DNA of 64,000 bases from the IMG/VR virus record IMGVR_UViG_3300025364_000003, positions 124,001 to 188,000 of that record; one strand, 5' to 3'. The notes beneath the pieces are model-generated. The model saw only the letters and a program-made list of their open reading frames with translations. It ran no database searches and was not told where the DNA came from. Positions within the stretch are counted from its first letter, which is position 1; the number at the start of each line of letters is the position of its first letter. Positions 1,934 to 64,000 of this stretch are shown piece after piece. A program made the position numbers and the translations under genes.

Positions 1934-3619
1934 TTAACGAATTCCGCTTCCCTCTTCAGCTTCAAGCTCGTTAGGTTTTCTAACGAGCTTTTTCTTTTCT
2001 ATATCATGACCCTTCACTTGTCCGACGTCTCTTAAATCGAACCCTGGCATTAGTGCAATTTTTTGCTTTGGAAAGCTTCCTCTTGCATTTGCATAACATG
2101 CTTGTCCAACAATCTCGGTAAAGGCTGCTGGAATTGCTTTTTTGGGCAAGAGTTTAGCATGTGCATTGAAAGCGGCCACTTCCCCTTTGTCACTAAAATC
2201 CACATTAGCCAAGATGTGAACAATATAATCATGAACAGCTCTAAACTTCAGATTTTGTTCAGGTGTAAACACATCATGTTGATTATAATCAGTTGATATT
2301 TTCAAAACGCCAGTTTTTTTAACTTCTTCGGACATTTCTTTCTGCGAATTATAAGGTTGCCCAGGAACAAACTCAACCTTTACCTTGGAAAGCATTCTCT
2401 GATACATTTTCTCAATATGTGAGATTAGTGCTTTATACGATGCAACAGCCTCAGGATCATAATCTGGGAGTTCATCATATGCATCTGCTACTAACTCACA
2501 ATATTTCTTGTAATTTGATAGAACCATTTTTTCTTGCAGGTGTCGGTCAAATCTTGCCTGGCTTTCATTTAGAGAATTGTGGACAACTTTGCCTGAGCGC
2601 TTATCAACAACCTTGAAATTGGGACTCCAAAATTTGGAGTAATCTGAAATGAATTGCTGCGGAAGGTTCCCATAGACAAGCTCAAGCACTTGTCCACGTC
2701 CTAAAACGATGGCAACAATTTTGTTTCGACCACTGAAACCAACTGGTTCTGTAATTCTTAAGGTTGTTTGCAGGCGCCACTCATCTTCTTTTGGAGGGAG
2801 CGCAAATTTTCTATATCTTTGTGAAAGCTTATCAAGAGCTTGTAAAAACTTCTTTTCTCCTTCTATAACATTAAATGTAGGGATTTCATTTTTCTGGTAC
2901 ATTTCTTGTGCAATTTCTCTAGCCTTTTCCCAATCCATCTTTTGTTCTAGGGCGTATTCATACGATTCAATATAGGCTTGCTTCGCCCTACCTTTCTTCA
3001 TGTCAACGTGACCCAAAACTCTTTCCATGGCTGCATCGAAAGTGTCTTGCATCATCGCCTTGTCCATTGGCATTTTTTCACTTGTCTTGAGTTTGTTATG
3101 CAAATTTGTGGCGAAGTCGGACATAAGTTCTTTATAAAAATTTGGGTCAGCATCAATGGTGCCTTTGGCCATTGGCACCGCTAAATCTAAATCTCTAGCA
3201 CCAAAATGTGAGCGTAACGCTTCTGCGAATGCTCGTTGTACAGGCATACGAACATCGTCTTCATCTGCTTTGGCAGATTGGGGCACGAGCTGAGCTACAA
3301 CAATCATCATTCGGCTTTCGCCACCAGTTGACATGGCATCTCTAGCAGAGCTATAGGCAGTTACAATGTTGTCAGTCCAATAGCTACCTTTCAGGGAATG
3401 CATTGACGGGCTTAGAATGGAACTCGCTTCAAGTTCTTCTTCGCCTTTCCAGCGACCTTCGGTTGGGTCTGGAATCATTCCGAGTTGGTAAATTTTTGGC
3501 AGATGTTTTGAACTTGTCCCGTGATACATTATCACGGGTTTTGCCCTCTTCCGCTCAAGAAGAAAATCAACTTCTTCTTTTACCAGTTTTTTGATGATAT
3601 TTTTGAGGTTATCGTTCAC
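1934..3619 (-). CDS. putative internal head polyprotein: leader + ADP-ribosyltransferase-fold domain + second conserved domain
   Basis: Leader LKNIIKKLVKEEVDFLLE; MYHGTS..L..I...G..P...GSYWT ART-like motif; second domain with FRAVHDYIVH...GE..AF..H...FTEIVGQ after SLNE/HLQE sites. Confidence 0.6.
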   Translation of the reverse strand: MNDNLKNIIKKLVKEEVDFLLERKRAKPVIMYHGTSSKHLPKIYQLGMIPDPTEGRWKGEEELEASSILSPSMHSLKGSYWTDNIVTAYSSARDAMSTGGESRMMIVVAQLVPQSAKADEDDVRMPVQRAFAEALRSHFGARDLDLAVPMAKGTIDADPNFYKELMSDFATNLHNKLKTSEKMPMDKAMMQDTFDAAMERVLGHVDMKKGRAKQAYIESYEYALEQKMDWEKAREIAQEMYQKNEIPTFNVIEGEKKFLQALDKLSQRYRKFALPPKEDEWRLQTTLRITEPVGFSGRNKIVAIVLGRGQVLELVYGNLPQQFISDYSKFWSPNFKVVDKRSGKVVHNSLNESQARFDRHLQEKMVLSNYKKYCELVADAYDELPDYDPEAVASYKALISHIEKMYQRMLSKVKVEFVPGQPYNSQKEMSEEVKKTGVLKISTDYNQHDVFTPEQNLKFRAVHDYIVHILANVDFSDKGEVAAFNAHAKLLPKKAIPAAFTEIVGQACYANARGSFPKQKIALMPGFDLRDVGQVKGHDIEKKKLVRKPNELEAEEGSGIR

Positions 3620-3634
3620 CCTGATAAATATGAA

Positions 3635-3868
3635 CTATGTTTTAGTTTCGTTATCAACTTCGGACTTCATTTTATTGTCAATTTGATTTATAGAAGCTTG
3701 TGTATGATAAGAAGCAACATCATCAGCTAGCTCTGCTGTCCACTTTACCTTTAGTTTTCTGGCGTTGGGCACAATGGCTGTTGTTTGTACATGAATCCAA
3801 TTTGGCAACTGGCTACGATAAATCTTTTCAGCTCGATAGAATTTGATCAAGTAAACTAAGTTCCTCAT
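3635..3868 (-). CDS. small hypothetical protein (LIxxYRxEK motif)
   Basis: ORF track; ATGA coupling with 3865-4083. Confidence 0.6.
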   Translation of the reverse strand: MRNLVYLIKFYRAEKIYRSQLPNWIHVQTTAIVPNARKLKVKWTAELADDVASYHTQASINQIDNKMKSEVDNETKT

Positions 3869-4083
3869 TTTTCAATTAACTTTTGTAAAATTTGAAACAC
3901 TTCAAGGTCTTCAATAGTCTTATCAATGTCACATGAGAATCCATCAAATGGAATATTGGGTCCACCAAATGCTTTTAGCAATGTCAGGGTCTTTTTGGCA
4001 GCTTCTTTTCTTCTTATGGCTTCATGGTATTGTCTTTCGGACCGGTAGATGCAAACAAGAGCAGTAAATTGAAGTTCCTTCAT
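3865..4083 (-). CDS. small hypothetical protein (LVxxYRxER motif)
   Basis: ORF track; ATGA coupling with def. Confidence 0.6.
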   Translation of the reverse strand: MKELQFTALVCIYRSERQYHEAIRRKEAAKKTLTLLKAFGGPNIPFDGFSCDIDKTIEDLEVFQILQKLIEK

Positions 4084-4646
4084 TTACGACGCTTTCCTTT
4101 TTGGGGTTTTTTGTTTTTTTCATTCTGAATTTGGTAACGCTGCGGAATTGAAACACCGTTGAGATGATCGAATTCATGTTGAAATAACCTGGCTGCCCAT
4201 CCTTCTAGTTGTTTTTCTTTCTCGACGAATTCGCCCTTCTCATTAGGTTCTACCCATTTAGCTGTGATCGTTTTCCAGCGAGTAATTTTGTATCCTTTTC
4301 CTGGTACAGAAAGACAATATTCAGCCATGTCCCATTTGCCATCATCGAGACGAGGCTCAAAGTTTGGGTTAACGTAAAGACGAAACTCGGAACGAAATTT
4401 GTAATCCCAGCCATCGCCATCCATTTCACGGCACAACATCACTTTTTTGAAAAGTCCCACTTGTGGAGCTGCCAAACCAATGCCATCCTCTAACATGCAG
4501 GTCTGTACCATTTTCCAGCCAAGCTCTTCAAAACCATCAAATTTTCCTGATTCGATCTCTTTAGCTTTTATTTTTTTTATTCGTTCCCAATGAAGAATTT
4601 CCATTGGCTTTGTTTTTGACGGGATTTCGTTTAAATCAAAAAGCAT
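4080..4646 (-). CDS. def: peptide deformylase
   Basis: GIGLAAPQVG, EYCLSVPG and QHEFDHLNG, the three PDF motifs; AAGGAG RBS. Confidence 0.95.
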   Translation of the reverse strand: MLFDLNEIPSKTKPMEILHWERIKKIKAKEIESGKFDGFEELGWKMVQTCMLEDGIGLAAPQVGLFKKVMLCREMDGDGWDYKFRSEFRLYVNPNFEPRLDDGKWDMAEYCLSVPGKGYKITRWKTITAKWVEPNEKGEFVEKEKQLEGWAARLFQHEFDHLNGVSIPQRYQIQNEKNKKPQKGKRRK

Positions 4647-4711
4647 GCTAACTCCTTGGTTTAATATAGCATGCCTTGTTTAAAAACAAATCGATAAACT
4701 ATAGAGTAATT

Positions 4712-5011
4712 CTACTTAGGTTTTGGTCCTTTGAAAGCTTGGAAAGGTACTTGATAGAGTGCTCTTCCGATCATCGATAAAGTAAGATCAAAGTCTTCTC
4801 TTAGTTTTTGAATTTCTTGATCGACGATTCCTTCATATTGGTCTTGACTTTCTATTTGATCGGCATAAGCACGTATGCCATTCTGAACGACTTGCATAAG
4901 TTGCTCTTTGAACCTATAGGCTTTGCCCATATGAACTTTACCATCGCTTTCAACAATCAATGATTCACGTACCGTTTCACGGATTAGTTTTTTGAGTTCT
5001 TCAAGTTTCAT
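4712..5011 (-). CDS. hypothetical leader-bearing (putative internal head) protein
   Basis: Probable start ATG at 5011 (MKLEELKKLIRETVRESLIVE), 6 nt after a TATTTA motif. Confidence 0.65.
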   Translation of the reverse strand: MKLEELKKLIRETVRESLIVESDGKVHMGKAYRFKEQLMQVVQNGIRAYADQIESQDQYEGIVDQEIQKLREDFDLTLSMIGRALYQVPFQAFKGPKPK

Positions 5012-5022
5012 CAGAGGTAAAT

Positions 5023-5493
5023 ATGACAAAGCAGGTGATTATTATAGGAGTTACGGGCCATCGAAAGCTTGATCACGATAAAGATGTTGTTAAAGAAGTG
5101 ATACGTGAAAAGTTACATCAATATGAGGCTGATGCAGTTGTCACTGGAATGGCACTTGGGTTTGATATGTTAGTAGCTGAAGTGTGCCTAGAAGAAACTA
5201 TTCCATTTGTTGCGGCTATACCATGCAAAGACCAAACAAAATTATGGCCGCCACATGAGAAAATACGTTGGACCGAGTTGATGAAAAAAGCTTGGAAATA
5301 TAAAATTGTTTCACCTGGGCCTTTTGAGACTTGGAAACTTTTTGAAAGAAATCGTTGGATTGTTGATCGTTCAAATATTATGTTGAGCTATTGGAATGGG
5401 GTACCCAAAGGAGGAACAGCGGCAACAGTTAAAGAAACCAAGAAATCTAAACGCCCTCACGAGAACCTGTATCCTCTTTGTGAATCCAGGTAA
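5023..5493 (+). CDS. YspA/DUF1273-like SLOG family nucleotide-binding protein
   Basis: IGVTGHR, GMALGFD, AIPC..Q...W, RNRWIVD.S, YWNG..GGT motifs. Confidence 0.85.
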   Translation: MTKQVIIIGVTGHRKLDHDKDVVKEVIREKLHQYEADAVVTGMALGFDMLVAEVCLEETIPFVAAIPCKDQTKLWPPHEKIRWTELMKKAWKYKIVSPGPFETWKLFERNRWIVDRSNIMLSYWNGVPKGGTAATVKETKKSKRPHENLYPLCESR

Positions 5494-6897: not shown

Positions 6898-7560
6898 ATG
6901 TCCATCTACGAAAAATATATCAAACAACTTATCGAAGAAGAGATCAATCGAAGTCTTCTTGAACAGGATTTGCCAGTTGAAGAACCGGCAGACACGCCTG
7001 CTGATGTTCCGGCACCCGATGCTGGTGCAGCGGGCGAAGCCGGGGCTCCAGAGGCCGGTGGAGAGGAAATTGATTTAGACATTGGTGCTGAAGGCGGCGA
7101 TATAGATTTGGACGTTGGAGGCGCTGCTGGGGGGCTCGAAGGAGGAGAACTGGGTGGCGATCTTGAGGACACTGAAGGCGTCGAGGGAGAAGAAGGGCTT
7201 GATGTAGCAGGTGGTGGTTTTGGAGGAGGCTTTGGCGGTGGTGGATTCTCTTTTGGAAGCGATGGCGAACCAGGACTGACTCCCGATGATGAAGAGGAGG
7301 CAGACACCGTTACAACTGTTGGTCCAGAAGATGTTGAAATCCCAGATGACCCATATATGGCCATTACTGACGAGGCAATCAATTTACTAAAAACAACTCG
7401 TCAGCCTGAGGTTATTCTAAAATCAGTTAAATCATCAATTCAGAGATATTTTGATGAATTTGATGATGCAACACCAGTAATTAAAACATTGTGGGATACT
7501 GAAGACATTACTCTTCGAGACGTTGCGAGAAGATTGCTTCTATTTATCAAAGGAAAATAG
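6898..7560 (+). CDS. acidic Gly-rich leader-bearing protein (putative head core/scaffold-like)
   Basis: Leader YIKQLIEEEINRSLLE; low-complexity D/E/G/A middle. Confidence 0.7.
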   Translation: MSIYEKYIKQLIEEEINRSLLEQDLPVEEPADTPADVPAPDAGAAGEAGAPEAGGEEIDLDIGAEGGDIDLDVGGAAGGLEGGELGGDLEDTEGVEGEEGLDVAGGGFGGGFGGGGFSFGSDGEPGLTPDDEEEADTVTTVGPEDVEIPDDPYMAITDEAINLLKTTRQPEVILKSVKSSIQRYFDEFDDATPVIKTLWDTEDITLRDVARRLLLFIKGK

Positions 7561-7574: not shown

Positions 7575-7895
7575 ATGAAAATTACTGATGACGAACTTAG
7601 ATTGATGGTCCGTGAAGCTGTGCAAAAGAAAGTTGCGAAGCTTAAAGAGGCTAGTGATTTTACAGCACGAAGACAAATCGTTCACTCGGCTGAGAAGGCT
7701 TCAATGGATTTCGAAAAGGAAATTGTTGGACTTCTCAATCTTGTAAAACCAGATGAGATGCCACCTGCGCTTCAAAAACAATATTTCTACATTGTGGAGC
7801 AAATGAAGGACGAAATTAAATCTGCGGTTATGAAAGCAACACGTGATCTTGCCAAACTCCCGAAGACAGAAATGGGAACGCAGAAGAAACGCTAA
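7575..7895 (+). CDS. leader-bearing hypothetical protein
   Basis: MKITDDELRLMVREAVQKKVAKLKE; AGAGG RBS. Confidence 0.75.
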   Translation: MKITDDELRLMVREAVQKKVAKLKEASDFTARRQIVHSAEKASMDFEKEIVGLLNLVKPDEMPPALQKQYFYIVEQMKDEIKSAVMKATRDLAKLPKTEMGTQKKR

Positions 7896-7928: not shown

Positions 7929-8252
7929 ATGAAAAAGATTAGAAAAAGCGAATTAAAGGGCATGGTCAAAGAGGCCGTCAGAAAAGGTCTGCAAGAGAAA
8001 TTTGATTTTACAAACGACCTTGTTCCTGATGATGTTGCAGGATATTCACGAAAAGTTGATGAGTTCCTTAAAGACACTATCAAAAAGGCAAGAGAATTGC
8101 ATGACGAAGGCGAAGAAATGATGCGGGCCAATATTCTTTCGTCGTACGGGGTTCAGGAAAGAAATCGTTTTCTTCTTTACAACGTAGGTTTTTTAAATAA
8201 CCTTGTTGCAAGTTTGATTGCAAGACTTGAACACAAGTATCGTCAAGGGTAA
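7929..8252 (+). CDS. leader-bearing hypothetical protein
   Basis: MKKIRKSELKGMVKEAVRKGLQE; TATTTA motif at 7903. Confidence 0.75.
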   Translation: MKKIRKSELKGMVKEAVRKGLQEKFDFTNDLVPDDVAGYSRKVDEFLKDTIKKARELHDEGEEMMRANILSSYGVQERNRFLLYNVGFLNNLVASLIARLEHKYRQG

Positions 8253-16205: not shown

Positions 16206-17276
16206 ATGCCAGCAAAATCACAAGATCAGCAGCAGGCCGCCGGAATTGCATTGCAGGCCAAAAGAGAAGGCACTGTGGACGAGCTACCCAGCGGTTCAGC
16301 TTCCAAAGAAATGGCCAAATCGATGACTAAAAAGGAATTGGAAAAACTGGCTGGAACAAAACATAAAGGGTTGCCAAAAGACATAGACGAGTCCAAAACA
16401 TGGGCCGGCTCGTCGTTAGTAGCTGTTTTCAAGGAGGAAATGCAAGGCGTTTCTGACCAAGACGATGAAGAAGAACAAATCACAACACAAAAATCCAAGG
16501 TAGAACGTTTGAATGATCGAGAAATTGGCACCGGCAAAGGCACAGAAGATACTTGGACTTCTACTGCTGGAGGAACTGCACCAGCCATTGCCAATAACGC
16601 TCGTAGTCCGATGACTTCAAATACTGCCGGTGCACGTGTTGCCGAGCAAGTAAAACTTTCAACCGGCAAGGAAACATGTCCAGCATGTGACGGCACTGGC
16701 CTGAAGGATGGCAGAGATAACAGACCAGCTCCTATGTGGCAACCGGATCTCTGTCCTGTTTGCCTTGGAAAAGGCGAGGTAGAAACAGGAAAAGAACTTG
16801 AAGAAATTCATGCTTCAAACAAAATAAATGAAACAATTAATCTCAGCAGGTGGCAACAGCTTGCAGGACTTAAAGTTGTTTCTGAACTTTTAACAGAAAA
16901 AAAAGAAAAGCGGGTGCAAAAAGCCGTGGACTCAAAAGCAGGTCAGGCAAAGCCTAATAAAGCTGCTAAATCCGTAGCAAAAGAAAGCACTTCATTTGAA
17001 GAAGTGTTAAAATCTCTTTTTAAAGAAGGAACGACTACAGAACAGAGATATTTTGATACCAATCAGGACGAAATTGGTGAAGGCAGAAACCCAAATAGCC
17101 TTGACATCGTTTTTGAAATGGACACAGCTCAGGCAAAAAATTATGTTAGTCGATTAGCAAAACATGGCTGGTCCTGGGACAAGGTTGCAGAACAACTAAA
17201 AAACCAATATGGAGTCAGGCCATATGAGATCGACAAAGTGTTGTTTCCTCATTGGAAAGAAGTAACTGGTCAATGA
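16206..17276 (+). CDS. modular protein: DUF3008-like N-terminus + DnaJ-type zinc finger + RWxxLAGL motif
   Basis: PAKSQDQQQAAGIAL.AKR...ASKEM..SM..KELE.LA.TK.KGLP; CPACDGTG...CPVCLGKG; several I/L-x-E sites. Confidence 0.7.
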   Translation: MPAKSQDQQQAAGIALQAKREGTVDELPSGSASKEMAKSMTKKELEKLAGTKHKGLPKDIDESKTWAGSSLVAVFKEEMQGVSDQDDEEEQITTQKSKVERLNDREIGTGKGTEDTWTSTAGGTAPAIANNARSPMTSNTAGARVAEQVKLSTGKETCPACDGTGLKDGRDNRPAPMWQPDLCPVCLGKGEVETGKELEEIHASNKINETINLSRWQQLAGLKVVSELLTEKKEKRVQKAVDSKAGQAKPNKAAKSVAKESTSFEEVLKSLFKEGTTTEQRYFDTNQDEIGEGRNPNSLDIVFEMDTAQAKNYVSRLAKHGWSWDKVAEQLKNQYGVRPYEIDKVLFPHWKEVTGQ

Positions 17277-17491
17277 CAAAAATTAGCAAACGTCGTTTGA
17301 TGGAATTAGCGGGGTTGGACATTGCCCCTTCGCCAACGAGTGTCAATGCATTTCATGCTCCGGGTCACATGGCAAAAGTAAACCAAGCACAAGAAATAAG
17401 AGATGTGCTTGGCCAAGATGAAGAAGATACTGTGCCCTCTGATGATATTGAAGAAGTAGAAAGTGAACTACTTGCTGTCGATTTTGACTAA
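17273..17491 (+). CDS. small acidic protein with ISKRRLMELAGL leader
   Basis: Likely start ATG 17273 (ATGA overlap). Confidence 0.6.
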   Translation: MTKISKRRLMELAGLDIAPSPTSVNAFHAPGHMAKVNQAQEIRDVLGQDEEDTVPSDDIEEVESELLAVDFD

Positions 17492-36073: not shown

Positions 36074-38617
36074 ATGAAAGCAATGTCTTCCAAGAACAAA
36101 AATAATAATTGGGAAAAGCAATTCCGTGAACTTGAAAAAAGGGCGGTTAGACATGAACAAATTTTACAAGAGGCTGGTTATGCTGGAGGCCCGAGTTCCG
36201 TTGATGGGTCTGCAACTTTCAGGGGAGGCCCATACGGTTTTGGAGGCGTAAATCAACTGGCTGCTGGTTTGTCTGAGCCGGTAAAGAAGTTGAAAAAACA
36301 AAGAGATGAGGAAGCGGTTTATAACATTGCAAGCCAACAAAGAATAAATCGTGGGTACCCGGCACCACAATCCGTCACAGGATTTCCCGGTGGTGAATCT
36401 AATTCCGGCATTCGCTCTGGACAGCATTTCCCCACAGAAATTGAACCAATAGCAGTTTCTTCCGACGACCTTTCAAAAATGGCTGCTGACGAAGATCCAA
36501 CAGATGACTATTTTGGCTTTGATGATGATGAATTAGAAGACATGAAAGATAGGTCAGACAGAGGGCTGAAAGAATTTGGAGTATCAGGTGCTCAAGGAGC
36601 TATGAGAGGTGTTCCTTCAGACAAGAATTATCGTGACCTTCCTGGGTGGCCACGTCACAATTCGCTTGAGAAACCCGGCAACTTCGTTCCAGAAATTGAA
36701 GGAGACGAAGATGGGGATGGCGAAGAAGATGACTACTTGACCGATGAGGAATACGTCAATGACGTGCTGCGTTTGAATGGCATGGGGGTTAAACCCGGTC
36801 ATCTCAAAAAATTGTTTGGTCAGGGTGGGCTTGAGGAATCAGCTCTCTATGAGCGCACGCTTTATCATGGAACTGTGATTGATCACAAGGACAGCATAGA
36901 GCAGTATGGCCTCACGGGTGAACTTGGAGACTGGGTAAAAGATGCTTACGGTTTGGAACTGGATGAAGAAGACTGGGAAGAACAACTTGGTGGTATAACT
37001 TTCGCTGCTCAAAAGAGCGACATGAGCATGGCTGTTGGAGCGATGCGTTTTCACATTGGCAAGAAGCTGGGAAAGTCACTGAGGGATGTAACAATTGAAG
37101 ATATTCGTCGCTGGGGTATGTTGGTTGTCATAAAAGATGTCGAAGAAGAAGACGATTCATATGGCGACGGGTGGAAACAGCGTCCACCACATGGGCAAGA
37201 AGGCTATTATGATGAATATCCTGTTTCTGTAGAGCCTGGTGATTGGTTTACTAAAGAACAAGTGTACATCGATCATGTTCTTACAGGTGGTAAACTAATT
37301 GACTTCCTTCGTCGACATGGAGCACTCAGACATGTTACTTCGCAAGTAAAAGAAGACAAAGAAGCAGCTGCACGAAGAGAGTTGATCAAACTTGCAGTTG
37401 CTTATCATGATCCCAAGTATCGGGATGATATTGTAAATAAAGTAAAGCAGCTGTCTGGGAAAATGCTGCAAAAGCAACTTGAAAACTACAGAGATATTGA
37501 AGAAGCACATGAAACCATTGCTCAAAAGAGAGCGCAAAGATACGGCGGGACTGCGCAAAAGCAGCGAGGACAACAGCTAAAATTTGATTTTGGGGAAGCG
37601 CTAAGTTTGAAAAATGTATTTCTAGAAACGTATGTTGCTCCCCCCTATGGTCCAGAACCCGACAAAGGAACAGAGCATTACAAGCGTGGGAATTGGGAAG
37701 AAACTCCAATAGGAGATGATTGGCTTATTAATCCAGTCGATCATTCTGGTGGTCATGCTGAAATGCCAGCAGCAAAACATAGTCCTGGCAGACAAGCTTA
37801 TGGACAAATAGGTTCTCCTAAAGACTTTGTACCTGAAGACTGGGAGCAGAGACATTCCAAAACAAAAGAGGAACCAATGGATCCAGAAGAACTGAAAAAA
37901 TTTATCGAATCTGTTGTTAAGGAAGCAATCAGAGAAGAAAGAGTGAACGAAGAAGACTTGGTTGAAGGTTCGAAAAATGAACCAACCAATCCAGAACTTT
38001 GGTCTAGGGCAAAAGTAGCAGCAAAGCGTAAGTATGATGTATATCCGAGCGCTTATGCTAACGCTTACGCTAGTAAATGGTATAAAGACAAAGGTGGTGG
38101 CTGGCGCAAAAAGAAAAAACCCAAGAAAGAATCTCTTGAGAATATCATTCGAAATCTCGTTAAAGAAGAAATGGGCGTTCAAGAAAAAGTTCACAAAGAT
38201 AGCGGTCTTGGAAAATGGTTTGGAGAAAAGTGGGTTGATATCTCCAGAAAGAAAAAAAGCGGTGGACATCCTGAATGTGGCGCCTCGGCTGACAAGGGTA
38301 AAAGAAAAAGTGATAGTTCAAAAGCATACCCAAAGTGCGTGAAGAAGTCAAAGGCGCAATCCATGACCAAAAAGGAAAAAGAAAGTGCTACTCGCCGTAA
38401 AAGAGCAAAGCCTAACAAACCTGGAAAGCCTGACAACACAGCCACAGACAAGACAAAAAAAGAAGCATACACTGGCATTGACGACAAAACAGGTCGTGGA
38501 GAACCAAAAGGTGGCAGTAAGGCTTTTCAAAAAAGTCGTAAAAAAGTTTTTGACTACGATGAAGAACACAAACCCAAGGGAATTGAGGATTTGAAAAATT
38601 ATCACATGGATGATTAA
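36074..38617 (+). CDS. large modular internal-head-type polyprotein with ART-like domain
   Basis: RTLYHGT...I.QYGL...GGITFA domain; YDVYPSAYAN and GL.KWF.EKWVDI...YPKC modules; internal leader copies ELKKFIESVVKEAIRE and LENIIRNLVKEE. Confidence 0.65.
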   Translation: MKAMSSKNKNNNWEKQFRELEKRAVRHEQILQEAGYAGGPSSVDGSATFRGGPYGFGGVNQLAAGLSEPVKKLKKQRDEEAVYNIASQQRINRGYPAPQSVTGFPGGESNSGIRSGQHFPTEIEPIAVSSDDLSKMAADEDPTDDYFGFDDDELEDMKDRSDRGLKEFGVSGAQGAMRGVPSDKNYRDLPGWPRHNSLEKPGNFVPEIEGDEDGDGEEDDYLTDEEYVNDVLRLNGMGVKPGHLKKLFGQGGLEESALYERTLYHGTVIDHKDSIEQYGLTGELGDWVKDAYGLELDEEDWEEQLGGITFAAQKSDMSMAVGAMRFHIGKKLGKSLRDVTIEDIRRWGMLVVIKDVEEEDDSYGDGWKQRPPHGQEGYYDEYPVSVEPGDWFTKEQVYIDHVLTGGKLIDFLRRHGALRHVTSQVKEDKEAAARRELIKLAVAYHDPKYRDDIVNKVKQLSGKMLQKQLENYRDIEEAHETIAQKRAQRYGGTAQKQRGQQLKFDFGEALSLKNVFLETYVAPPYGPEPDKGTEHYKRGNWEETPIGDDWLINPVDHSGGHAEMPAAKHSPGRQAYGQIGSPKDFVPEDWEQRHSKTKEEPMDPEELKKFIESVVKEAIREERVNEEDLVEGSKNEPTNPELWSRAKVAAKRKYDVYPSAYANAYASKWYKDKGGGWRKKKKPKKESLENIIRNLVKEEMGVQEKVHKDSGLGKWFGEKWVDISRKKKSGGHPECGASADKGKRKSDSSKAYPKCVKKSKAQSMTKKEKESATRRKRAKPNKPGKPDNTATDKTKKEAYTGIDDKTGRGEPKGGSKAFQKSRKKVFDYDEEHKPKGIEDLKNYHMDD

Positions 38618-44891: not shown

Positions 44892-44919
44892 AAAAAGCCA
44901 CGTCTAACGTGGCTTTTTT
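44892..44919. terminator. bidirectional rho-independent terminator
   Basis: AAAAAGCCACGT-CTA-ACGTGGCTTTTT between convergent genes. Confidence 0.88.
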
Positions 44920-45517
44920 ATTTAACTAATTCAATTTCTATTTGAACCTCTGGAAATTCTTCCACAAGTTTTTCCGCAGCTTGTACATTAAACAGATTGT
45001 CATCGAAGAATCGTAGAATTTTTATATTTCCTTGTTGAAGCTTACCCCTCAGATATGCTTGTTTTCTTGCAGCGTTTAGCTCACCAACATCACCCGTAGG
45101 CGTGAAATCTCCAACTGCTACAACTTCAACGTCCGGCATTCCTTGTTGGGATATGAATTCAATAATTTCATTGGCCGCTGGTCGTGCAGTACAAATAGAA
45201 ACCCCGTAAGGTCCTAGACGCTTGTAGTCGGCTTTCATTCGATCAAAATGAGGTAAAGTAACAGGATTTAAAATAACTCCAAAGTCTGATAAATCAAATT
45301 CTTCATCATCCTTAAGATGATATTCATGAAATTCGTGCGGCGATAGTTCTCTTGTTTTACCAGTTGTCTTATTTATTAAGTGAACAGTGCCTTCTGTACT
45401 GCAAAGTGTATCGTCAAAATCATAAACATTTAGCTCATTTGGTGCGTTATCAAATATTTCTCTCAATATTTTACTTGCATATTCTTTGATCAATATTTCT
45501 AATCTGGGCTTTGACAT
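44918..45517 (-). CDS. HAD-superfamily phosphatase with leader
   Basis: VYDFDDTL (motif I), ICTAR (II), K, FFDDN..N (IV); leader LEILIKEYASKILRE. Confidence 0.8.
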   Translation of the reverse strand: MSKPRLEILIKEYASKILREIFDNAPNELNVYDFDDTLCSTEGTVHLINKTTGKTRELSPHEFHEYHLKDDEEFDLSDFGVILNPVTLPHFDRMKADYKRLGPYGVSICTARPAANEIIEFISQQGMPDVEVVAVGDFTPTGDVGELNAARKQAYLRGKLQQGNIKILRFFDDNLFNVQAAEKLVEEFPEVQIEIELVK

Positions 45518-46982: not shown

Positions 46983-47444
46983 ATGAAAATTTCCAAGAAA
47001 CAAATAAGAACCTTGGTTCGTGAAGCAGTACGAGTGCAGCTTGATGAAATTTATGGCATTTCACAGTATGAACGTATGCTTGAGCTAAAACATCAATATG
47101 AAGACGACATTAAAGTTCTTGATAAGATTGGTCCCGAATTATATCAAAAGATCATTGATTTTAGAGAACAGGCAAGTGATTTCAATGAATTCAAAAGGCT
47201 TGTGAGGGGCATGCCCGTTCACATGGCAAAGAAGTTTTGGGATCGCCAAATGGGCAAAGTTTCAACAGAGCGACTTGTGGAACTGCGTGATGAATGGGAA
47301 GAACTTAAAGATCGTTTCAAAGAGATAGATGCAACAACAGAAGCTGACCGAGCTTATGGACGCAAGCGAACAAAAATTATTGATACAGAAACTGGTGAGG
47401 TCATTGGGACCGAAACGGACAAACGAGGCAGTCTGGGTTCCTGA
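46983..47444 (+). CDS. leader-bearing hypothetical protein
   Basis: MKISKKQIRTLVREAVRVQLDE; TACTTA 46941. Confidence 0.75.
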   Translation: MKISKKQIRTLVREAVRVQLDEIYGISQYERMLELKHQYEDDIKVLDKIGPELYQKIIDFREQASDFNEFKRLVRGMPVHMAKKFWDRQMGKVSTERLVELRDEWEELKDRFKEIDATTEADRAYGRKRTKIIDTETGEVIGTETDKRGSLGS

Positions 47445-51742: not shown

Positions 51743-52489
51743 GTGTTACTCAAAGAATATATAAACTATCAAGTTGCTAGTGTCTTGCTCGAAATCAGAG
51801 GCACGTTCAAGTGGAATGAATTTAAGGCACTTAGTACCCTAGACCAAAAACTTCAATACGCTCAACAACATCTCAAGGAGCTTGGAAGAGGTAGCAGCAG
51901 GGCTGCCTTCCTACTAAGCAATCGATATGTTTTAAAGATTGCCCTTCCTCAAGCGGCAGAAAAGGGAATGGGGCAGAACAAAGGCGAGCTTCAGGTCTTT
52001 GCTAATACGGCAAGCAAGAATTATGTAACCGCTATTCATGACGCTGGCGAAGATGGCCATTGGCTCGTTTCAGAAATTGCACGACCACTTGCAAGCACAG
52101 AAGAATTTCAGAAGCTCACAGGGGTTCCCTGGGAACAGTTTGTTTCTATACTGAAAAATCATGAAGATATCAAGAGTGAATTTAGCGAGATCGAACAGGG
52201 CATTCAAATGTGGTCTCGTCGTCTCAAAAATGCTCAATCGCAGGGTAATGAAGCGGGTATTGACAAGTTTACAAAGAACGTTCAAAACCTTCAGCAAAGA
52301 AAAACAAACCTTCAAAAAATGTTAAATTCACCAGTGGTACAAGGTGCTCTTGCTTTGATGAATCAAGCTGGTGTTATGCGTGGTGATATTCTTGAAGTGG
52401 ATCATTGGGGCAAAACCGCTGATGGTCGTGTAGTTCTATTAGACTACGGCTTTACAGAGGACTTGGTTGACCTTTACCGAGCTGCATGA
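51743..52489 (+). CDS. protein-kinase-fold enzyme, paralogue 1, with leader
   Basis: LGRGSSR Gly-loop, VLKIA Lys, QN..E helix C, D....HWG catalytic loop, LLDYG; leader LKEYINYQVASVLLE. Confidence 0.8.
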   Translation: MLLKEYINYQVASVLLEIRGTFKWNEFKALSTLDQKLQYAQQHLKELGRGSSRAAFLLSNRYVLKIALPQAAEKGMGQNKGELQVFANTASKNYVTAIHDAGEDGHWLVSEIARPLASTEEFQKLTGVPWEQFVSILKNHEDIKSEFSEIEQGIQMWSRRLKNAQSQGNEAGIDKFTKNVQNLQQRKTNLQKMLNSPVVQGALALMNQAGVMRGDILEVDHWGKTADGRVVLLDYGFTEDLVDLYRAA

Positions 52490-53283
52490 TGAGACTGAAA
52501 GAACAAATACGCTTCATGGTTTTTCAAACACTTCATGAAATTAGGAGTAATTTCAAGTGGTCTGAATTTAAAAAGATAGATGATCACTTTGACAGGGCCT
52601 TGTACCTTATAAACACTGGTACTCAAGTATTAGGGGAGGGAACTTCACGTCTTGTATTTTTGTTAAGCAATAGGTTTGTGCTCAAACTAGCCCAACTAGC
52701 CCAACCTCTTCCACGTTCTCCTCGTAGTTTTGAGAGAGGGAAGGCGCAAAACAAATATGAAGTAGATTTGTCTACCGATCCAGATGTAAAACCAATTGTG
52801 GCCGAAGTCTATGATGCGGCCGATGATTACTCGTGGATTGTTTCGGAGTTGGTTCGACCAATAAAAAATATAAATGAATTTAAAGATTTAACTGGGTTTT
52901 CGTTCACTGATTTTCGCCAGGTTCTTAAACTTGTTTTTGAGGGCGAACTTGAAAATACCATTGAGAAACATCGCAAATTGCGACAGAGGTATATCGAAGA
53001 GATCAATCGACTTGACTCTGAAGATACGGCCGATAAAACAAATATTGAATACTACAAAAGCCAACTTGAGGCTATTGAAAAAGTTATTGAATATCAAACT
53101 GAATTACCCGAACACCCAATGGTACAAGCTGCTATTGAATTAATTTCTGATAAGGGTGCAATGGCTGCCGATATGATCGTGTTAGACCACTGGGGCAAAA
53201 CTGCCGATGGCCGTGTAGTTTTGTTGGATTATGGTTATTCGAGAGATGTAGCTAGAAAACATTATGATGTTACGTGGATCTGA
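52486..53283 (+). CDS. protein-kinase-fold enzyme, paralogue 2, with leader
   Basis: LGEGTSR, VLKLA, QNKYE, DMIVLDHWG, LLDYG; leader LKEQIRFMVFQTLHE. Confidence 0.8.
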   Translation: MMRLKEQIRFMVFQTLHEIRSNFKWSEFKKIDDHFDRALYLINTGTQVLGEGTSRLVFLLSNRFVLKLAQLAQPLPRSPRSFERGKAQNKYEVDLSTDPDVKPIVAEVYDAADDYSWIVSELVRPIKNINEFKDLTGFSFTDFRQVLKLVFEGELENTIEKHRKLRQRYIEEINRLDSEDTADKTNIEYYKSQLEAIEKVIEYQTELPEHPMVQAAIELISDKGAMAADMIVLDHWGKTADGRVVLLDYGYSRDVARKHYDVTWI

Positions 53284-53307: not shown

Positions 53308-54017
53308 ATGTTAGTTGCAAATCTTAAAGAACAAATACATTTCATGGTGTCGCAAACTCTTTTAGAAATTAGGAGTAATTTCAAGTGGTCGGAGTTTAAA
53401 GAACTTGAAACTCCTAAGGGAATGGCATATTACCTAGAAAAAACAGGCACCGAAAAACTAGGCAGCGGGTCTTCTAGATGGGTTTACTTATTGAGCAACC
53501 GCTATGTCTTAAAATTAGCTGATCCTTTAAATCCTCGTAGGGGACTGGCCCAAAATCATGCAGAACTTGAAGTTGCAACCGACTCAGTGTAGCTCCATTC
53601 GTGTCGCAAATTTTTGATTATGATCCTGATGGTTTCTGGTTGGTATCTCAACTTGTTAGACCATTGAATAGCGATGAAGATTTTGAAAAACTAACTGGTG
53701 GAATCGACTGGGAAGCATTTCAGTATGCCGTACAAACTTTTTTGTATGAAGCTAGGGGGGATTTTAAAAAAGCTGCTGATGAACTTGAGTTTAGGGCATC
53801 AAGGAGAAATTCTGATCATTATGCAGAAGTATTACTCAAGGCTCTTTCATATCTTAAGACAAACAAGTGGGTGAGAAATTTTCTAAAAATGGCAAAAAAA
53901 TACGATTTGCTTCCAGAAGATTTAACATTTTTAGATCATTGGGGCAAAACCGCTGATGGACGTGTAGTGCTTCTTGACTATGGTTATACGGCATTAGTTC
54001 ATGATCTACACTACTGA
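53308..54017 (+). pseudogene. protein-kinase-fold enzyme, paralogue 3, split by a 1-nt frameshift near 53588
   Basis: 53308-53592 has leader, GSGSSR, VLKLA, QNHAE; 53601-54017 has WLVSQ, DLTFLDHWG, LLDYG; one added base gives a continuous ATDSxVAPFVSQ matching STDPDVKPIVAE. Confidence 0.75.
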
Positions 54018-61500: not shown

Positions 61501-61531
61501 CAATCAAGGCAATTTCGTTTCATCGCAATAA
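58502..61531 (+). CDS. tail sheath protein 2
   Basis: SAGV, AGVIGTA.KGPAFVP, PWFAPAGFARG, INP, VWGQRTL, RVNVRRL, PTRTLEFL.IDF. Confidence 0.93.
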   Translation: MTQINFKSAGVSARVINLTGPTAIQPVGIPAGVIGTAVKGPAFVPVTFATTQDFTVVFGLPEDNKANGPLAVGEWLRNRQAATYLRVLGAGQAKRREQSGENQGKVQGAGFVVGDEQPQAGGALDNNMYANEGGPLGRLYFLNTFMSEANGSGFLTDAGLPGEGTPIVRAVLLAASGVIITLSSSLSASTMVPGAAPASNLVATEENKSGSFLGSVNLSGGRQEFVMFLNGHKGTDPLFPNVITASFDVDAPNYLGSALNTDPFNLEKAGYLLYADYSVHPNLATVTGSSVVDTTTDEVVGGGLAAGFEPIAFLATGSLSRNSGSTVVPSYENWEDRYTTPKSPWIVSQRLGGKPRNLFRIHLLDDGAWGNDQVKWSVENIVPAINDVNPYGTFDLLIRRFNDIDKKREATEAWRGLSLNPSSDNYIARVIGDLNTFYNFDAAEGNQKIQTTGEYPNQSKVIRVEVSPDVENVELDASALPLGFRGIPHLVTSGTAPLAPLGEALADSVLITGSSDPAHNVVQMPVQFRRSLNLGSVTSRRVDKGLYWGIQFTRQLSVEEPNSTTEPERTIANFTKFFPKHQTDWLNVVVSDNEGVADAAETGILDADRFNNNLFSLENIRIVRDPITNLADTTQLVSWSYVRAGNVATSGSVRALTADDLSDSSVRQVAKFSGIIQGGFDGVRIFDEDTANLTNLAIIEEMDNTNRGVSNGPTVKAYDTALDIIADDTETDIQLLTIPGIRHPQITDDALQLIEERFDAMYIMDLPEYDTTNQLVTASSQDLSVRFTANQHRDRGLNTSFGAAYFPDVILRDTLNNTIRQVPPSVAVLGAFGLNDAVGFPWFAPAGFARGALQTTEESTLPLSRDNMDALQDVKINPLVSFAGSDGVVVWGQRTLLARDSALERVNVRRLLIQLRRDVRRVARRFVFEPGRAETLARFSQLVNPILKRVQDQRGVERFLVRIDTTTTTQADIENRTVRGKIFLVPTRTLEFLSIDFVVTNQGNFVSSQ

Positions 61532-61563
61532 TTGAATAAATTTCCCCATAAGAGAGGTAAATA

Positions 61564-61668
61564 ATGAAGGGTCTACTCCACCGTTTAATAAATCTTTTCA
61601 ACTCTGAGCACTGTTGCTGCTGTTGTGGCTGCTGTCAGTGCCGGAACTGCAAGGGCAGCTGTAAGTGA
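61564..61668 (+). CDS. 34-aa Cys-rich peptide (metallothionein-like), missing from ORF track
   Basis: MKGLLHRLINLFNSEHCCCCCGCCQCRNCKGSCK*; GAGAGG RBS; stop overlaps next GTG (GTGA). Confidence 0.65.
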   Translation: MKGLLHRLINLFNSEHCCCCCGCCQCRNCKGSCK

Positions 61669-62519
61669 ATGATAGGGATAGAATACAAGGATTCATTTCT
61701 GACTTAGTCAAAGAAGAATTGACTGAGGTATCTCCTGTATTTTATCCCACAATCAAAAAGGGAATAGAAGCTGGCCGTGAGGCTTCTCGTAGACAGGCTT
61801 CGGCCTACAGGGGAAGGCACGGCCAAACCTTTTCTGATGAACTTGCTCAAATACGTCGAGATTCCAAGCGTAAAAGGGATAGGCATCATAAGATGCTGTC
61901 GCTTTCCAAGCATCTGAAAAAAGTTTTCGGAAATAATGCATATGGTGGCTCTGCACTTGCCACTGTAGAAATTTCTAACGATTTTAAAGCTGATGTTAAA
62001 GCTGAATTTGTGAGCGTTATGGGAATTGATAATGTCAAGTTTGTAGTTTCAATAAAGAAAAACGGCAAAGAAATTCTTACCAAAGAATTTGTTGCTGGAT
62101 TAGGGGCAAAACAAAGTGTAGCAAGGTTCATTAAGAAATTTCAGGAAAAATTGCAAGAGGATGCAGCAATGAAGGTTACGAAAGCGCAACTAAAAGAAAT
62201 GGTCCGCAAGATCATTAGAAAAAAATTAACAGAAATGGATCTTGGTGAAAAAAGTCGATCTACTACAGGGGCTGACAGGAGGATGAGTCCATCTCAACTT
62301 GAAAAGCATCTTGAAAAGGAAAGAGAAAGATCAAAACAAGCCAAGGTTGTTAAAAAACGACAAGCAATGAAGCAATCGGCTCGTGGTATGGAATTAGAGA
62401 GTCGCATAGATATTGATCGAGATGTTGACAACGAAGAAATGGTTGATGCTAAAGAAGAAGAATATCTTACCAAGCTCGAAAAGTTAATTCTTCAAAGTGA
62501 AAAGGAAGGGCTTTGCTAA
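61665..62519 (+). CDS. leader-bearing protein with two leader copies
   Basis: RIQGFISDLVKEELTE and internal MKVTKAQLKEMVRKIIRKKLTE. Confidence 0.7.
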   Translation: MNDRDRIQGFISDLVKEELTEVSPVFYPTIKKGIEAGREASRRQASAYRGRHGQTFSDELAQIRRDSKRKRDRHHKMLSLSKHLKKVFGNNAYGGSALATVEISNDFKADVKAEFVSVMGIDNVKFVVSIKKNGKEILTKEFVAGLGAKQSVARFIKKFQEKLQEDAAMKVTKAQLKEMVRKIIRKKLTEMDLGEKSRSTTGADRRMSPSQLEKHLEKERERSKQAKVVKKRQAMKQSARGMELESRIDIDRDVDNEEMVDAKEEEYLTKLEKLILQSEKEGLC

Positions 62520-62520
62520 A

Positions 62521-63078
62521 ATGACTACTATAAAACAAATAATTGAAGAAGCTGTCAAGGAAGCACTTGACCCAGTTGGGAAAACTGAAACGGGGAAAAA
62601 GGTAGGGGTCGGTCAAATTCGTGACATCGACAACGATGGTGATATTGATAGTTCTGATGCGTATCTTGCATATCGTCGAAAAAAAATTACACAGGCAATG
62701 AAAAAAGAAGATCGTGAACTCAATGAAAAAACAATGACTTGGGGTGATCTTCCATCGGAAGATGTTTTTGAAGATTTAATGGATGGCAAAGCTTTCAACA
62801 TGAAACTTCAGGGTGCCGACTCTCTTGCGTTTGAATATGCCATGACTCTATCTGATAATCCAGGAGCGGGAAGTACAGCATCTGCGGGCAGTCTTAGAGC
62901 TACCATAGAAGCCCTTATCAACGCTCCAGAGCCAGACGAACTTTCTGATGACCAATACGAAGAGGTTGAAAATGTTCTTGACGAATGGAACGACAGATAC
63001 GGGGATGTGAGCATTGAAGAAACTGCGTGGTCTTTGGCTTCTGGTATTATGGAAGTCCTTGGAATTGAATGGATTTGA
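62521..63078 (+). CDS. leader-bearing head-core-type protein
   Basis: Start likely MTTIKQIIEEAVKE; LDPVG...DIDNDGDIDSSDAYL..RRK.I..AM module seen in T4-like phage head proteins. Confidence 0.65.
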   Translation: MTTIKQIIEEAVKEALDPVGKTETGKKVGVGQIRDIDNDGDIDSSDAYLAYRRKKITQAMKKEDRELNEKTMTWGDLPSEDVFEDLMDGKAFNMKLQGADSLAFEYAMTLSDNPGAGSTASAGSLRATIEALINAPEPDELSDDQYEEVENVLDEWNDRYGDVSIEETAWSLASGIMEVLGIEWI

Positions 63079-63087
63079 TAGAGTAAA

Positions 63088-63582
63088 ATGCCAAAGAGTA
63101 AATATCCAAAAAGCGTACAAGATCTACCAGAAGACGACTACAGTCAGTGGACGGCAGTTTATCACAGTGCACGTGACGGGGGCGACAGCAAAGAAACCGC
63201 AGCAAAAAAAGCTTGGGGTGCTGTTAAGGAATCCGGCTTGCAAGAAAGTGGTGAAGATAATCCATGCTGGGATGGTTACGAAATGGTCGGTATGAAAACC
63301 CAAAACGGGAAAGAAGTACCTAACTGCGTTCCGAAAAATGAATCAAAAAAACCTGTACGTATTTCAAAAACGCAGCTTAAAGAAATGGTAAAGCGGGCCG
63401 TTAGAAATCAATTACAAGAGGCTTCCACTGTTCGAAAGCGTCAAATGATACTTGATCGGTTTAGAACCGAAGCAAACCTTTCAACTTATGAATTGCTAGA
63501 AGACGTCCTTGAATTCATTGATGAAAAGACTTGGCAGAAAGTATTGCAGGGCATTGGTAACAAATATGGTTATCGACTTTAA
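63088..63582 (+). CDS. ChaB-like domain + CWxGY...VPNCV module + internal leader
   Basis: P.SV..LP......W..VY.SA......ETA.K.AWGAVK (ChaB-like); NPCWDGYEMVGMK..NGKEVPNCVP; ISKTQLKEMVKRAVRNQLQE. Confidence 0.7.
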   Translation: MPKSKYPKSVQDLPEDDYSQWTAVYHSARDGGDSKETAAKKAWGAVKESGLQESGEDNPCWDGYEMVGMKTQNGKEVPNCVPKNESKKPVRISKTQLKEMVKRAVRNQLQEASTVRKRQMILDRFRTEANLSTYELLEDVLEFIDEKTWQKVLQGIGNKYGYRL

Positions 63583-63654
63583 CAGAATAAAACAAAGACA
63601 TAATAAATGAGCAGAATAATTTACCTATAGAGCCTTTATACGGGAACAGGTAAA

Positions 63655-64000
63655 ATGAAGCTTAATAGAACACAATTCAAGAAAATTTTAAAAGAGTGCA
63701 TCAGAGAATTAATAACAGAAGGTGCATTTGACAATGTAATCAAAGAAAATGTTCAACCAGTTGCTGCAACAGCTAGGGTTGCTCCAAATGATTTTGTAGG
63801 ACAGGTTACTAAAAATTCTACCACGGCGCAACCACCATTCTCTTCTGTTGGTCATATGACACCAAATGAAAGACTTAGGGAACTTTCTCGTATTGCAGCT
63901 ATGCAGACCGCTCAAGGTGACCCAAAACAAGCTGCAATGATGGAAAGTATTTTTGCAGACACGGCAATGACGACCCTACAATCGCAACTTGGAACAGAAA
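63655..64000 (+). CDS. leader-bearing protein, truncated by window edge
   Basis: Hand translation MKLNRTQFKKILKECIRELITEGAFDNVIKE... Confidence 0.7.
   Translation, partial: MKLNRTQFKKILKECIRELITEGAFDNVIKENVQPVAATARVAPNDFVGQVTKNSTTAQPPFSSVGHMTPNERLRELSRIAAMQTAQGDPKQAAMMESIFADTAMTTLQSQLGTE

Follow-up and report, generated by a model that had tools for sequence, protein, structure and literature searches.

What is the function of a short helix that recurs at the start of genes with nothing else in common? The question is raised by a 64,000-nucleotide stretch of DNA (the window; positions 124001–188000 of the 206,528-bp IMG/VR contig IMGVR_UViG_3300025364_000003), for which a sequence-only reading had proposed that about 15 unrelated genes share a leader loading their products into a phage head for ejection with the DNA. 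The precedent is the T-even internal proteins, which have nothing in common but an N-terminal leader that directs packaging; this capsid-targeting sequence (CTS) is a propeptide of 10–20 residues that gp21 removes after a glutamate, and many internal-protein genes were found through this packaging signal (PMC12373910, PMC3012670, PMC5694885). Injected internal proteins of T4 disarm restriction systems (PMC12373910). Here we report that the leader of the window (designated leader-1) is almost certainly a real, N-terminal, portable motif under selection. Two points go beyond the earlier proposal: leader-1 is a widespread family, and a second leader exists in the same genome. Judged by its genomic context, leader-1 is probably a head-targeting tag removed by a gp21-family (Peptidase_S77) protease. 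To our knowledge, it is in T-even phages alone that injected proteins have so far been identifiable from sequence, by virtue of the short CTS.

All of the instances in the sequence-only reading were found where they had been placed and read as quoted, including those opening at ATG 5011 (minus strand) and ATG 62521 (Table 1; genes are named by the coordinate of one end). We counted them with a loose regular expression composed after inspection of the data, h-[KRQE]-x-h-h-[KRQES]-[charged or polar]-x-h-x(2-7)-h-x-E, where h is a hydrophobic residue. In 9 of the 88 proteins a match begins no later than residue 20, whereas 500 composition-preserving shuffles average 0.04 such proteins and never exceed 1, an excess of about 200-fold; internal sites number 4 against 0.32 expected. 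A hidden Markov model (HMM) seeded with the window copies converged on 6 strong copies, 4 of them N-terminal (7575, 7929, 46983, and 63655) and 2 internal (residues 169–191 of 61665 and residues 90–112 of 63088), and on gene 4712. These 7 copies, 5 N-terminal and 2 internal, form the tight family, and the other copies are looser variants. An external HMM, built only from the leaders of other viral contigs, gave 7 matches of at least 6 bits in this genome, compared with 0.06 per shuffled proteome: L010:5555-5860 (35 bits), which is a leader-1 gene lying just beyond the window, 61665 at residue 169 (15.4 bits), 46983 (14.9 bits), 63088 from residue 92 (9.9 bits), 63655 (9.8 bits), 7929 (9.4 bits), and 4712 (6.6 bits). 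Therefore, the tight copies in the window are diverged members of the widespread leader family.

The instances in 1934, 6898, 45517, 47454, 48041, the 3 kinase-like genes, 62521, the N-terminus of 61665, and the 2 copies in 36074 are individually below significance, and homologues of the kinase-like and 1934 families elsewhere range from canonical leaders to the variants of the window. The claim of shared leaders is confirmed, with only about half of the listed copies statistically secure. The parts that follow the leader are mutually unrelated by BLASTP, the kinase paralogues excepted, in agreement with the claim that the carriers are otherwise unrelated. The leaders are only 51% identical at the DNA level and 41% at third codon positions, which argues for selection on the peptide and leaves recent duplication as no explanation for the similarity. 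The window copies end in LQE, LDE, ITE, LTE, LKE, IVE, or LLE, and orthologues of 7929 (75%–80% identity) keep both the leader and the L-x-E. As had been claimed, def, phoH, hsp20, the methyltransferase, the fibres, and the sheaths are without the motif, the sole exception being a chance-level internal match of the regular expression in sheath 1.

A degenerate DNA pattern, back-translated from M-K-h-[TS]-K-x-[QE]-h-[KR..]-x-h-[VIM]-[KR..]-E and scanned against IMG/VR, matched at least 200 gene starts in at least 120 loci, whereas base composition predicts approximately 0.5–2 chance matches in 50–200 Gb. The 120 listed loci (200 matches; median length 8.6 kb) were picked by the leader alone. 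Among the matches listed, (i) nearly all begin small open reading frames (ORFs; median 110 residues), many of them in tandem arrays, such as those of 8 (L126), 7 (L028), and 6 (L076); (ii) the consensus is MKITKxQL[KR]xII[KR]EE..L.E; (iii) conservation extends to residues that the pattern did not dictate, namely Ile3 (82%), Thr4 (92%), Leu8 (97%), Ile12 (95%), Glu15 (76%), hydrophobic residues at 16, 19, and 20, and Glu22 (41%), then Gly, Ala, Gln, or Asp; (iv) h-h-[KR]-E is invariant at residues 11–14, and a second h-x-E ends at residues 19–24 in 62% of the leaders, compared with 11.7% in equal-sized segments further along the same proteins; and (v) BLASTP sorts what follows residue 24 in 175 distinct proteins into 148 clusters. 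At the sequence level, the gp21-style (L/I)-x-E end ascribed to the leader was thus confirmed.

Searches by ordinary homology recover little of this family. A search with the first 40 residues returned orthologues only, as a word-based search misses motif-only relatives, and tblastn of a 26-residue leader and of leader proteins against cultured phages gave nothing or noise. Pfam, PHROGs, and PDB sequence searches on leader-bearing proteins returned almost nothing; the 10 longest listed leader proteins matched no Pfam family, and 10 from head-module slots matched no annotated PHROG. The literature search found no mention of the leader strings and no description of the leader family; a paper on moraphages deals with a different lineage, with genomes of up to 307 kb (PMC12619734). 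Contig L043 (IMGVR_UViG_GVMAG-S-1030632-100_000001) carries 3 leader-1 genes. It was the sole basis for a presence of the leader in giant eukaryotic viruses, which we rejected; despite its GVMAG label it has no giant-virus marker gene among its larger ORFs and is probably a phage fragment.

The sequence of the window is contained, identically, in the 460,987-bp contig Ga0081520_100001, of which window position 49406 is base 1 and window position 49446 the last base. The contig ends overlap by approximately 41 bp; thus, the genome is a circle of approximately 461 kb. Megablast with 24 kb of the window gave no nucleotide match to cultured phages, the tail sheath shares 29% identity with its counterpart in Microcystis phage Mel-JY01, and the majority of the proteins have no Pfam or PHROG family. 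Profile searches identified Portal_T4 (E = 5e-66), a Gp23 capsid protein (E = 2.5e-78), and a Peptidase_S77 protease (L009:2984-3604; E = 5.6e-22, 78.6 bits against a cut-off of 27); by tblastn this protease matched 2578 phage records, and most of these name the product a prohead protease or a prohead core scaffold protein. The portal and protease genes lie 7–10 kb upstream of the window (the protease approximately 7 kb), and a 753-residue acidic scaffold-like protein (L006:11663-13924) and the Gp23 capsid protein (L006:13980-15902) are encoded 8–10 kb downstream. The N-terminal region of the major capsid protein (MCP) carries a conserved LL[KRS]E. The interval from the sheaths to the scaffold is filled by 61665, 62521, 63088, 63655, and one further small gene.

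The same association recurs in the relatives. When the listed loci were searched with proteins of this phage, 57 of the 120 proved to encode a T4-type portal, an S77 protease, or a Gp23 capsid protein, in every case on the leader-gene strand; by a rough estimate, a random stretch of that length in a 200-kb genome would overlap the head module less than 10% of the time. The leader genes occupy 5 slots: upstream of the portal gene, in the portal–protease gap, directly after the protease gene, in the protease–capsid gap, and after the capsid gene. In T4, genes 67 and 68 lie between the portal and protease genes, and gene 22 lies directly after the protease gene. Leader genes resembling 63655 (MK.TK..K..VKEC..E...EG) lie directly 3′ of the S77 protease gene in L030, L033, L097, and L108. 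Being common in uncultured T4-like phages and located mostly near head genes, leader-1 is probably a new version of the T4 CTS.

Independent support for head targeting comes from the second leader (designated leader-2), with the consensus K-(I/L)-x-K-E-R-W-x-x-L-A-G-(L/I/V)-h-x-E. It opens 5 small ORFs in the 20 kb beyond the capsid gene, outside the window (L010:1833-8701), and a further ORF that adjoins the capsid gene (L006:17761-18132); altogether, the motif is N-terminal on at least 7 small ORFs of this genome. The core of leader-2, R-[WFM]-x-x-L-A-G-[ILV], also forms the very C-terminal end of the scaffold protein, both in this phage (L006:13880-13924) and in Mel-JY01, as well as in most listed loci with a readable gene upstream of the MCP gene, and 15 of its 17 occurrences in the listed loci lie within 5 residues of the stop. 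In other tailed phages, such as P22 (gp8), the C-terminus of the scaffold contacts the coat protein. By analogy, a copy of the scaffold tip that stands at the N-terminus of unrelated small proteins and has h-x-E behind it looks as one would expect of a docking peptide that was borrowed and given a cleavage site. The identity of leader-2 with the scaffold tip therefore supports head targeting independently of leader-1.

Comparison with the T4 CTS of IPI, IPII, IPIII, and Alt revealed that both systems have (i) a short N-terminal leader on otherwise unrelated proteins, ending in (L/I)-x-E; (ii) a Met-Lys start and an h-h-x-E element in the leader; and (iii) a genome with a gp21-family protease, a Gp23 capsid protein, and a gp20 portal, with the genes in hypervariable arrays. 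Leader-1 differs from the T4 CTS in that (i) it has no detectable sequence similarity to it and has 2 candidate cleavage sites; (ii) many of its carriers are encoded within the portal–protease–MCP module; and (iii) internal copies occur and the cargo here includes kinase-like and ART-like proteins (ART, ADP-ribosyltransferase). In RB55, a T4-species record, the h-x-E ends at residue 10 in both internal proteins examined, and gp23 has L-T-E at residue 65, the established position of its maturation cut. The proposal of a T4-CTS-like tag with a gp21-type site is supported by the S77 protease, the portal, Gp23, the linkage to the head module, and leader-2 at the scaffold tip, and not by sequence similarity to the T4 CTS, which the leader HMMs did not detect. 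As far as sequence-visible features go, the system resembles the T4 CTS in every one, but leader-1 is not a member of the T4 CTS sequence family.

Three other systems bear comparison. The genes 67, 68, and 22 of T4 occupy the same slots as the leader genes (the portal–protease gap and the position after the protease gene) and likewise encode small charged proteins, which are cut by gp21 (PMC5694885); unlike the leader carriers, they have no single common N-terminal leader. A stretch of T4-species gp67 (L134:3223-3465), h-I-K-E-E-K...L-I-E, resembles the core of leader-1; kinship with gp67, considered as a candidate, was rejected (3.6 bits, not significant). The phiKZ-like giants SPN3US, phiKZ, and 201phi2-1 bring a large variety of proteins into their heads, and a T4-related protease removes the long N-terminal propeptides of their ejection and inner-body proteins after Glu (PMC5694885, PMC10052503); these propeptides, however, often exceed 100 residues, carry an A/S/G-x-E motif, and do not amount to a single portable peptide that is conserved. 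Leader-2 resembles the coat-binding C-terminal peptides of scaffolds such as P22 gp8 in that its motif is the one found at the very C-terminal end of the scaffold in this lineage, and differs from them in having been moved to the N-terminus of small unrelated proteins, where it is followed by h-x-E; its capsid binding is putative. The system is of a known kind, that of the T-even phages. The apparently new elements are the leader family itself, with its length, its 2 sites, and its wide occurrence among uncultured phages; a second leader derived from the scaffold; and enzymes as cargo in a phage of 461 kb.

These observations suggest the following model, whose steps of docking, cleavage, packaging, and ejection we infer. 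Leader-1 would be a portable N-terminal mark for incorporation into the prohead of a T4-type phage and a functional analogue of the T4 CTS, with the consensus M-K-I-T-K-x-Q-L-[KR]-x-I-I-[KR]-E-E-h-x-x-h-L-x-E in relatives and a diverged form in this genome. The amphipathic Lys/Glu-rich helix would dock the nascent protein on the scaffolding core or the inner shell during prohead assembly. The S77 protease would then remove the leader after (I/L/V)-x-E, at h-h-[KR]-E (residues 11–14) and at a second site near residue 22. The mature proteins would stay in the head, where some are probably core or scaffold parts that are degraded; others may exit with the DNA, possibly including the kinase-like family, the H-Y-E ART-like domains, and the HAD-like (haloacid dehalogenase-like) protein. 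Leader-2 (K-h-x-K-E-R-W-x-x-L-A-G-L-h-x-E) would presumably target the binding site of the scaffold tip. Internal copies would most simply be relics or working sites of fusions of leader-plus-module cassettes. That cargo is ejected and acts in the host is possible, and we lean somewhat against it.

The domains assigned to the cargo by the sequence-only reading fared unequally: models support the kinase-like fold, whereas the ART-like and HAD assignments are weak. The kinase-like genes have 94 homologues; in an alignment of 53, G.GSSR.VF is conserved and Lys66, Glu91, Asp228, and Asp247 (LDYG) are invariant, in line with the Gly-rich loop, beta-3 Lys, alpha-C Glu, catalytic Asp, and DFG-like Asp of protein kinases. 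Pfam and PDB sequence searches with these genes were negative. The AlphaFold model of 52486 has a predicted local distance difference test (pLDDT) score of 93.6, and its top Foldseek matches, all of them protein-kinase-like enzymes, are MTR kinase, APH(2''), PknA/B, and PRPK (E = 7e-4 to 1e-2, probability 0.9–1.0), with a template modelling (TM) score of only approximately 0.33 because of a helical insert. A bilobal protein-kinase-like fold is thus supported, at the level of models, for 51743, 52486, and 53308/53601. Their N-terminal helix is conserved across the family and is a canonical leader in some members (e.g., P0070 and P0039). The third paralogue is divided into 2 ORFs in different frames (53308-53592 and 53601-54017), with the same split in 3 independent assemblies, and may be a pseudogene or a frameshifted gene.

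Gene 1934 (561 residues) comprises 2 separable modules, an ART-like H-Y-E domain and a widespread C-terminal domain. His33 (HGT), Tyr80, and Glu120 of the N-terminal domain are invariant in 18 homologues, and the model (pLDDT 90.4) has a helix at residues 3–25 (pLDDT 77) ahead of the first strand. The best Foldseek matches, Tpt1/KptA and PARP catalytic domains, are weak (E = 0.14–1 over approximately 100 columns); an H-Y-E ART-like fold with a helical insert is thus weakly supported by the model. Homologues of this ART-like domain occur with the leader, without it, and as internal tandem copies. In the tandem-domain homologues (P0106, P0151, P0200, and P0221), h-x-E and a basic stretch precede each copy of the YHGT domain, an arrangement that could allow polyprotein-style cleavage into modules. 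The YHGT motif was seen only by eye in gene 36074 and in L010:8708-9952. In gene 44918-45517, DFDDTL is visible and phrog_415 (polynucleotide kinase) matches weakly (E = 2.7e-6, by family description only); Pfam and PDB sequence searches were negative, and the HAD assignment, from sequence, is weakly supported.

Several observations weigh against reading leader-1 as a packaging tag. About half of the instances first listed are, singly, indistinguishable from ordinary amphipathic helices, and the window-seeded HMM also scores a helix inside the SLOG/YpsA fold of 5023, a likely false positive, so single weak copies are not to be trusted. Several copies are internal (36074, 61665, and 63088). The N-terminal helix of the kinase-like proteins is modelled at pLDDT 86–90; as it is also conserved, it may belong to the fold itself. 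Leader-1 is about twice as long as the T4 CTS (approximately 22 residues compared with approximately 10), the leader HMMs gave no positive score on the 2 internal-protein genes of RB55, and the leader has no significant sequence similarity to T4 gp67, gp68, or gp22. It is absent from the head module of the cultured cyanophage Syn1 and from the first 50 kb of the cultured pelagiphage HTVC008M, which leaves no cultured model to turn to. About half of the listed loci have no head gene in the fetched stretch, and some lie beside replication or repair genes (Pol III alpha, SbcCD-like, and a CCA-adding-type enzyme), which would fit with arrays placed elsewhere in the genome, like T4 internal-protein genes. 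The cargo of the listed leader proteins is mostly acidic. Finally, head targeting would have to apply to roughly one in five (approximately 20%) of the proteins in the approximately 100 kb covered, a high proportion.

The main rival explanation is that the carriers are mostly core or scaffold parts that are simply degraded: leader-1 would be an assembly or oligomerisation helix found only on such parts, which would make up the internal core and be destroyed at maturation, and nothing functional would reach the host. The leader genes in the gp67/gp68/gp22 slots beside the protease gene are consistent with this, as are the many small, acidic carriers of unassigned fold (61665 and 6898 are highly charged or of low complexity) and the presence of the leader-2 motif on the scaffold itself. 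However, the leader is here also found on enzyme-like folds (kinase-like, ART-like, and HAD-like), and the hypervariable arrays of small genes away from head modules resemble T-even internal-protein loci (PMC12373910). We consider this explanation unlikely, though the strongest of the alternatives. Less probable still is that the helix serves another target, such as a phage chaperonin, the membrane, or another hub protein, or that late genes generally carry it as an aid to solubility or translation initiation. The genome does encode 2 chaperonin-like proteins, the helix is of a generic Lys/Glu amphipathic type, and the loci without head genes could point the same way; but the physical linkage to portal, protease, and MCP genes is strong, the h-x-E is conserved at a fixed distance, leader-2 provides a parallel in its identity with the scaffold tip, and conservation spans 22 residues, far more than a translation start needs.

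Descent from one fast-evolving gene family, of which only the N-terminus is still recognisable, would make the leader not portable at all. Tandem arrays of small genes with the same start (those of 8, 7, and 6 genes mentioned above) are an outcome of serial duplication, and the 3 kinase-like genes are true paralogues. Against this, the cargo folds are clearly different (protein-kinase-like, ART-like with a helical insert, and HAD-like), the ART-like domain recurs in homologues that have the leader, in others that lack it, and in internal tandem copies, and the post-leader parts form the many BLASTP clusters given above; we regard such descent as quite improbable. Chance, that is, ordinary amphipathic helices in a Lys/Glu/Ile-rich proteome, is the least probable explanation by far, since the weakness of copies 47454, 48041, and 36074b and the scoring of the fold-internal helix in 5023 are outweighed by the shuffle tests, the N-terminal bias, the conservation in orthologues, and at least 200 pattern matches against approximately 1 expected, which refute it for the tight family, while individual weak copies may still be chance.

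Table 1. Leader copies, leader-like helices, and CTAYTTA copies in the window (positions are those of the window; both HMMs, window-seeded and external).
Feature	Position	Strand	Gene and remarks
Leader-1, N-terminal, tight	7575..7649	+	Gene 7575-7895, 106 aa; HMM 35 bits; regular expression; CTAYTTA 35 nt upstream
Leader-1, N-terminal, tight	7929..7997	+	Gene 7929-8252, 107 aa; both HMMs
Leader-1, N-terminal, tight	46983..47048	+	Gene 46983-47444, 153 aa; both HMMs; fits degenerate DNA pattern
Leader-1, N-terminal	63655..63720	+	Gene from 63655 to past window end, 163 aa as L006:10568-11059; both HMMs
Leader-1, N-terminal	4949..5011	-	Gene 4712-5011 (ORF 4712-5029, ATG 5011); HMM E = 7e-6 after iteration; 6.6 bits
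Leader-1, internal	62169..62237	+	Gene 61665-62519, aa 169-191; both HMMs
Leader-1, internal	63355..63423	+	Gene 63088-63582, aa 90-112, between ChaB/Cys module and C-terminal part; both HMMs
Looser leader	3554..3619	-	Gene 1934-3619, 561 aa; regular expression; similar leaders on homologues P0103-5, P0158, P0231
Looser leader	6898..6963	+	Gene 6898-7560, 220 aa, acidic, low-complexity; regular expression
Looser leader	45458..45517	-	Gene 44918-45517, HAD-like, DxDxT; regular expression; phrog_415, E = 2.7e-6
Looser leader, N-terminal	61665..61727	+	Gene 61665-62519; regular expression
Leader-like N-terminus, without terminal h-x-E	62521..62571	+	Gene 62521-63078 (ORF 62497-63078); gene callers pick ATG 62521
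Weak leader-like helix	47454..47501	+	Gene 47454-47765; by eye
Weak leader-like helix	48041..48097	+	Gene 48041-48442; by eye
N-terminal helix ending LLE, family-conserved	51743..51793	+	Kinase-like gene 51743-52489
N-terminal helix as in 51743	52486..52539	+	Kinase-like gene 52486-53283; alignment, AlphaFold model (pLDDT 93.6), Foldseek
N-terminal helix as in 51743	53308..53367	+	First piece (53308-53592) of split kinase-like paralogue
Internal leader-like helix a	37880..37939	+	Gene 36074-38617, aa 603-622; regular expression
Internal leader-like helix b	38129..38185	+	Gene 36074-38617, aa 686-704; by eye
Leader-2 (K.S.RRL.ELAGL), N-terminal	17273..17317	+	Small gene 17273-17491; motif is that of scaffold C-terminal peptide
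Leader-2 motif (SRWQQLAGL..SE), internal	16842..16886	+	DUF3008 gene 16206-17276
CTAYTTA copies	557, 7540, 7902, 8313, 13226, 16156, 19737, 26928, 36067, 40890, 46940, 51728		At most 50 nt upstream of same-strand starts

The internal leader of 61665 opens with an in-frame ATG at 62169, with GAGGA 7 nt before it (62150-62171), and a nested internal start at this position is possible. The proteins of 36074-38617, 62521-63078, 63088-63582, and 16206-17276 are chains of small modules with leader-like helices between them; the modules are ChaB-like, DUF3008, Cys-rich (CW.GY), and PSAYANAYA, and many PHROGs of unknown function were matched.

CTAYTTA occurs 16 times in the window, with no overall over-representation, and 12 of the 16 copies lie at most 50 nt upstream of a gene start on the same strand. 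Among the genes so preceded are the leader genes 7575, 7929, 46983, 51743, and 36074 and the structural genes 8328, 26956, and 40924; a similar sequence, ATACTTA, is found at −36 of the capsid gene. Judged by position, CTAYTTA is a candidate phage promoter element, which suggests that leader and structural genes may be under shared regulation. The T4 late promoter TATAAATA was tried as a timing marker and rejected, as it occurs 4 times where 2 occurrences are expected and precedes no leader gene.

The head module is in 2 parts, with the portal and S77 genes (L009) upstream and the scaffold and Gp23 genes (L006:11663-15902) downstream of the window, and approximately 70 kb of tail, fibre, and accessory genes separates the 2 halves. 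The T4-type portal gene contains an intein (L009:1-2000, approximately 8–10 kb upstream of window position 1; matches to Portal_T4 and Intein_splicing/HNH). Two tandem tail-sheath paralogues of approximately 1010–1020 residues lie at 55386-58445 and 58502-61531, and the order from sheath to leader genes is the same in the related contigs L109 and L076. The 2 chaperonin-like genes lie at 21543-23024 (minus strand) and at L009:7922-9589 (matches to a GroEL-like PHROG and to Cpn60_TCP1). A patatin-like phospholipase gene (13272-14138; E = 6e-38), with CTAYTTA upstream, lies within the structural region. GIY-YIG-type endonuclease-like genes are located at 1086-1931 and at L006:16087-16980, one of them directly 3′ of the capsid gene; homing endonucleases of T4 likewise lie directly after its capsid gene. 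No tRNA genes were found in the window.

Proteins injected with phage DNA act ahead of any phage gene expression. If leader-1 does the job of the CTS, sequence alone would suffice to draw up lists of packaged-protein candidates for phages of aquatic and other environments, including this 461-kb genome, and the kinase-like and ART-like families would be candidate factors of host takeover or counter-defence in the first minute of infection. The match between leader-2 and the scaffold tip offers a concrete route for the origin of such tags, as borrowed docking peptides, and a binding site to probe. As a tool, the leader could also allow foreign proteins to be packaged in the capsids of non-enterobacterial T4-like phages. 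In its broadest form, which we put forward tentatively and think rather unlikely as a whole, the system would be a packaging code with at least 2 tags (MKITK..IIKEE and the scaffold copy RWxxLAGL), both cut after h-x-E, by which dozens of proteins per genome would be loaded and injected, including kinase-like and ART-like enzymes and modular polyproteins. If this were true, the injected proteome of such phages, likely including anti-defence and takeover proteins, would be readable directly from metagenomes.

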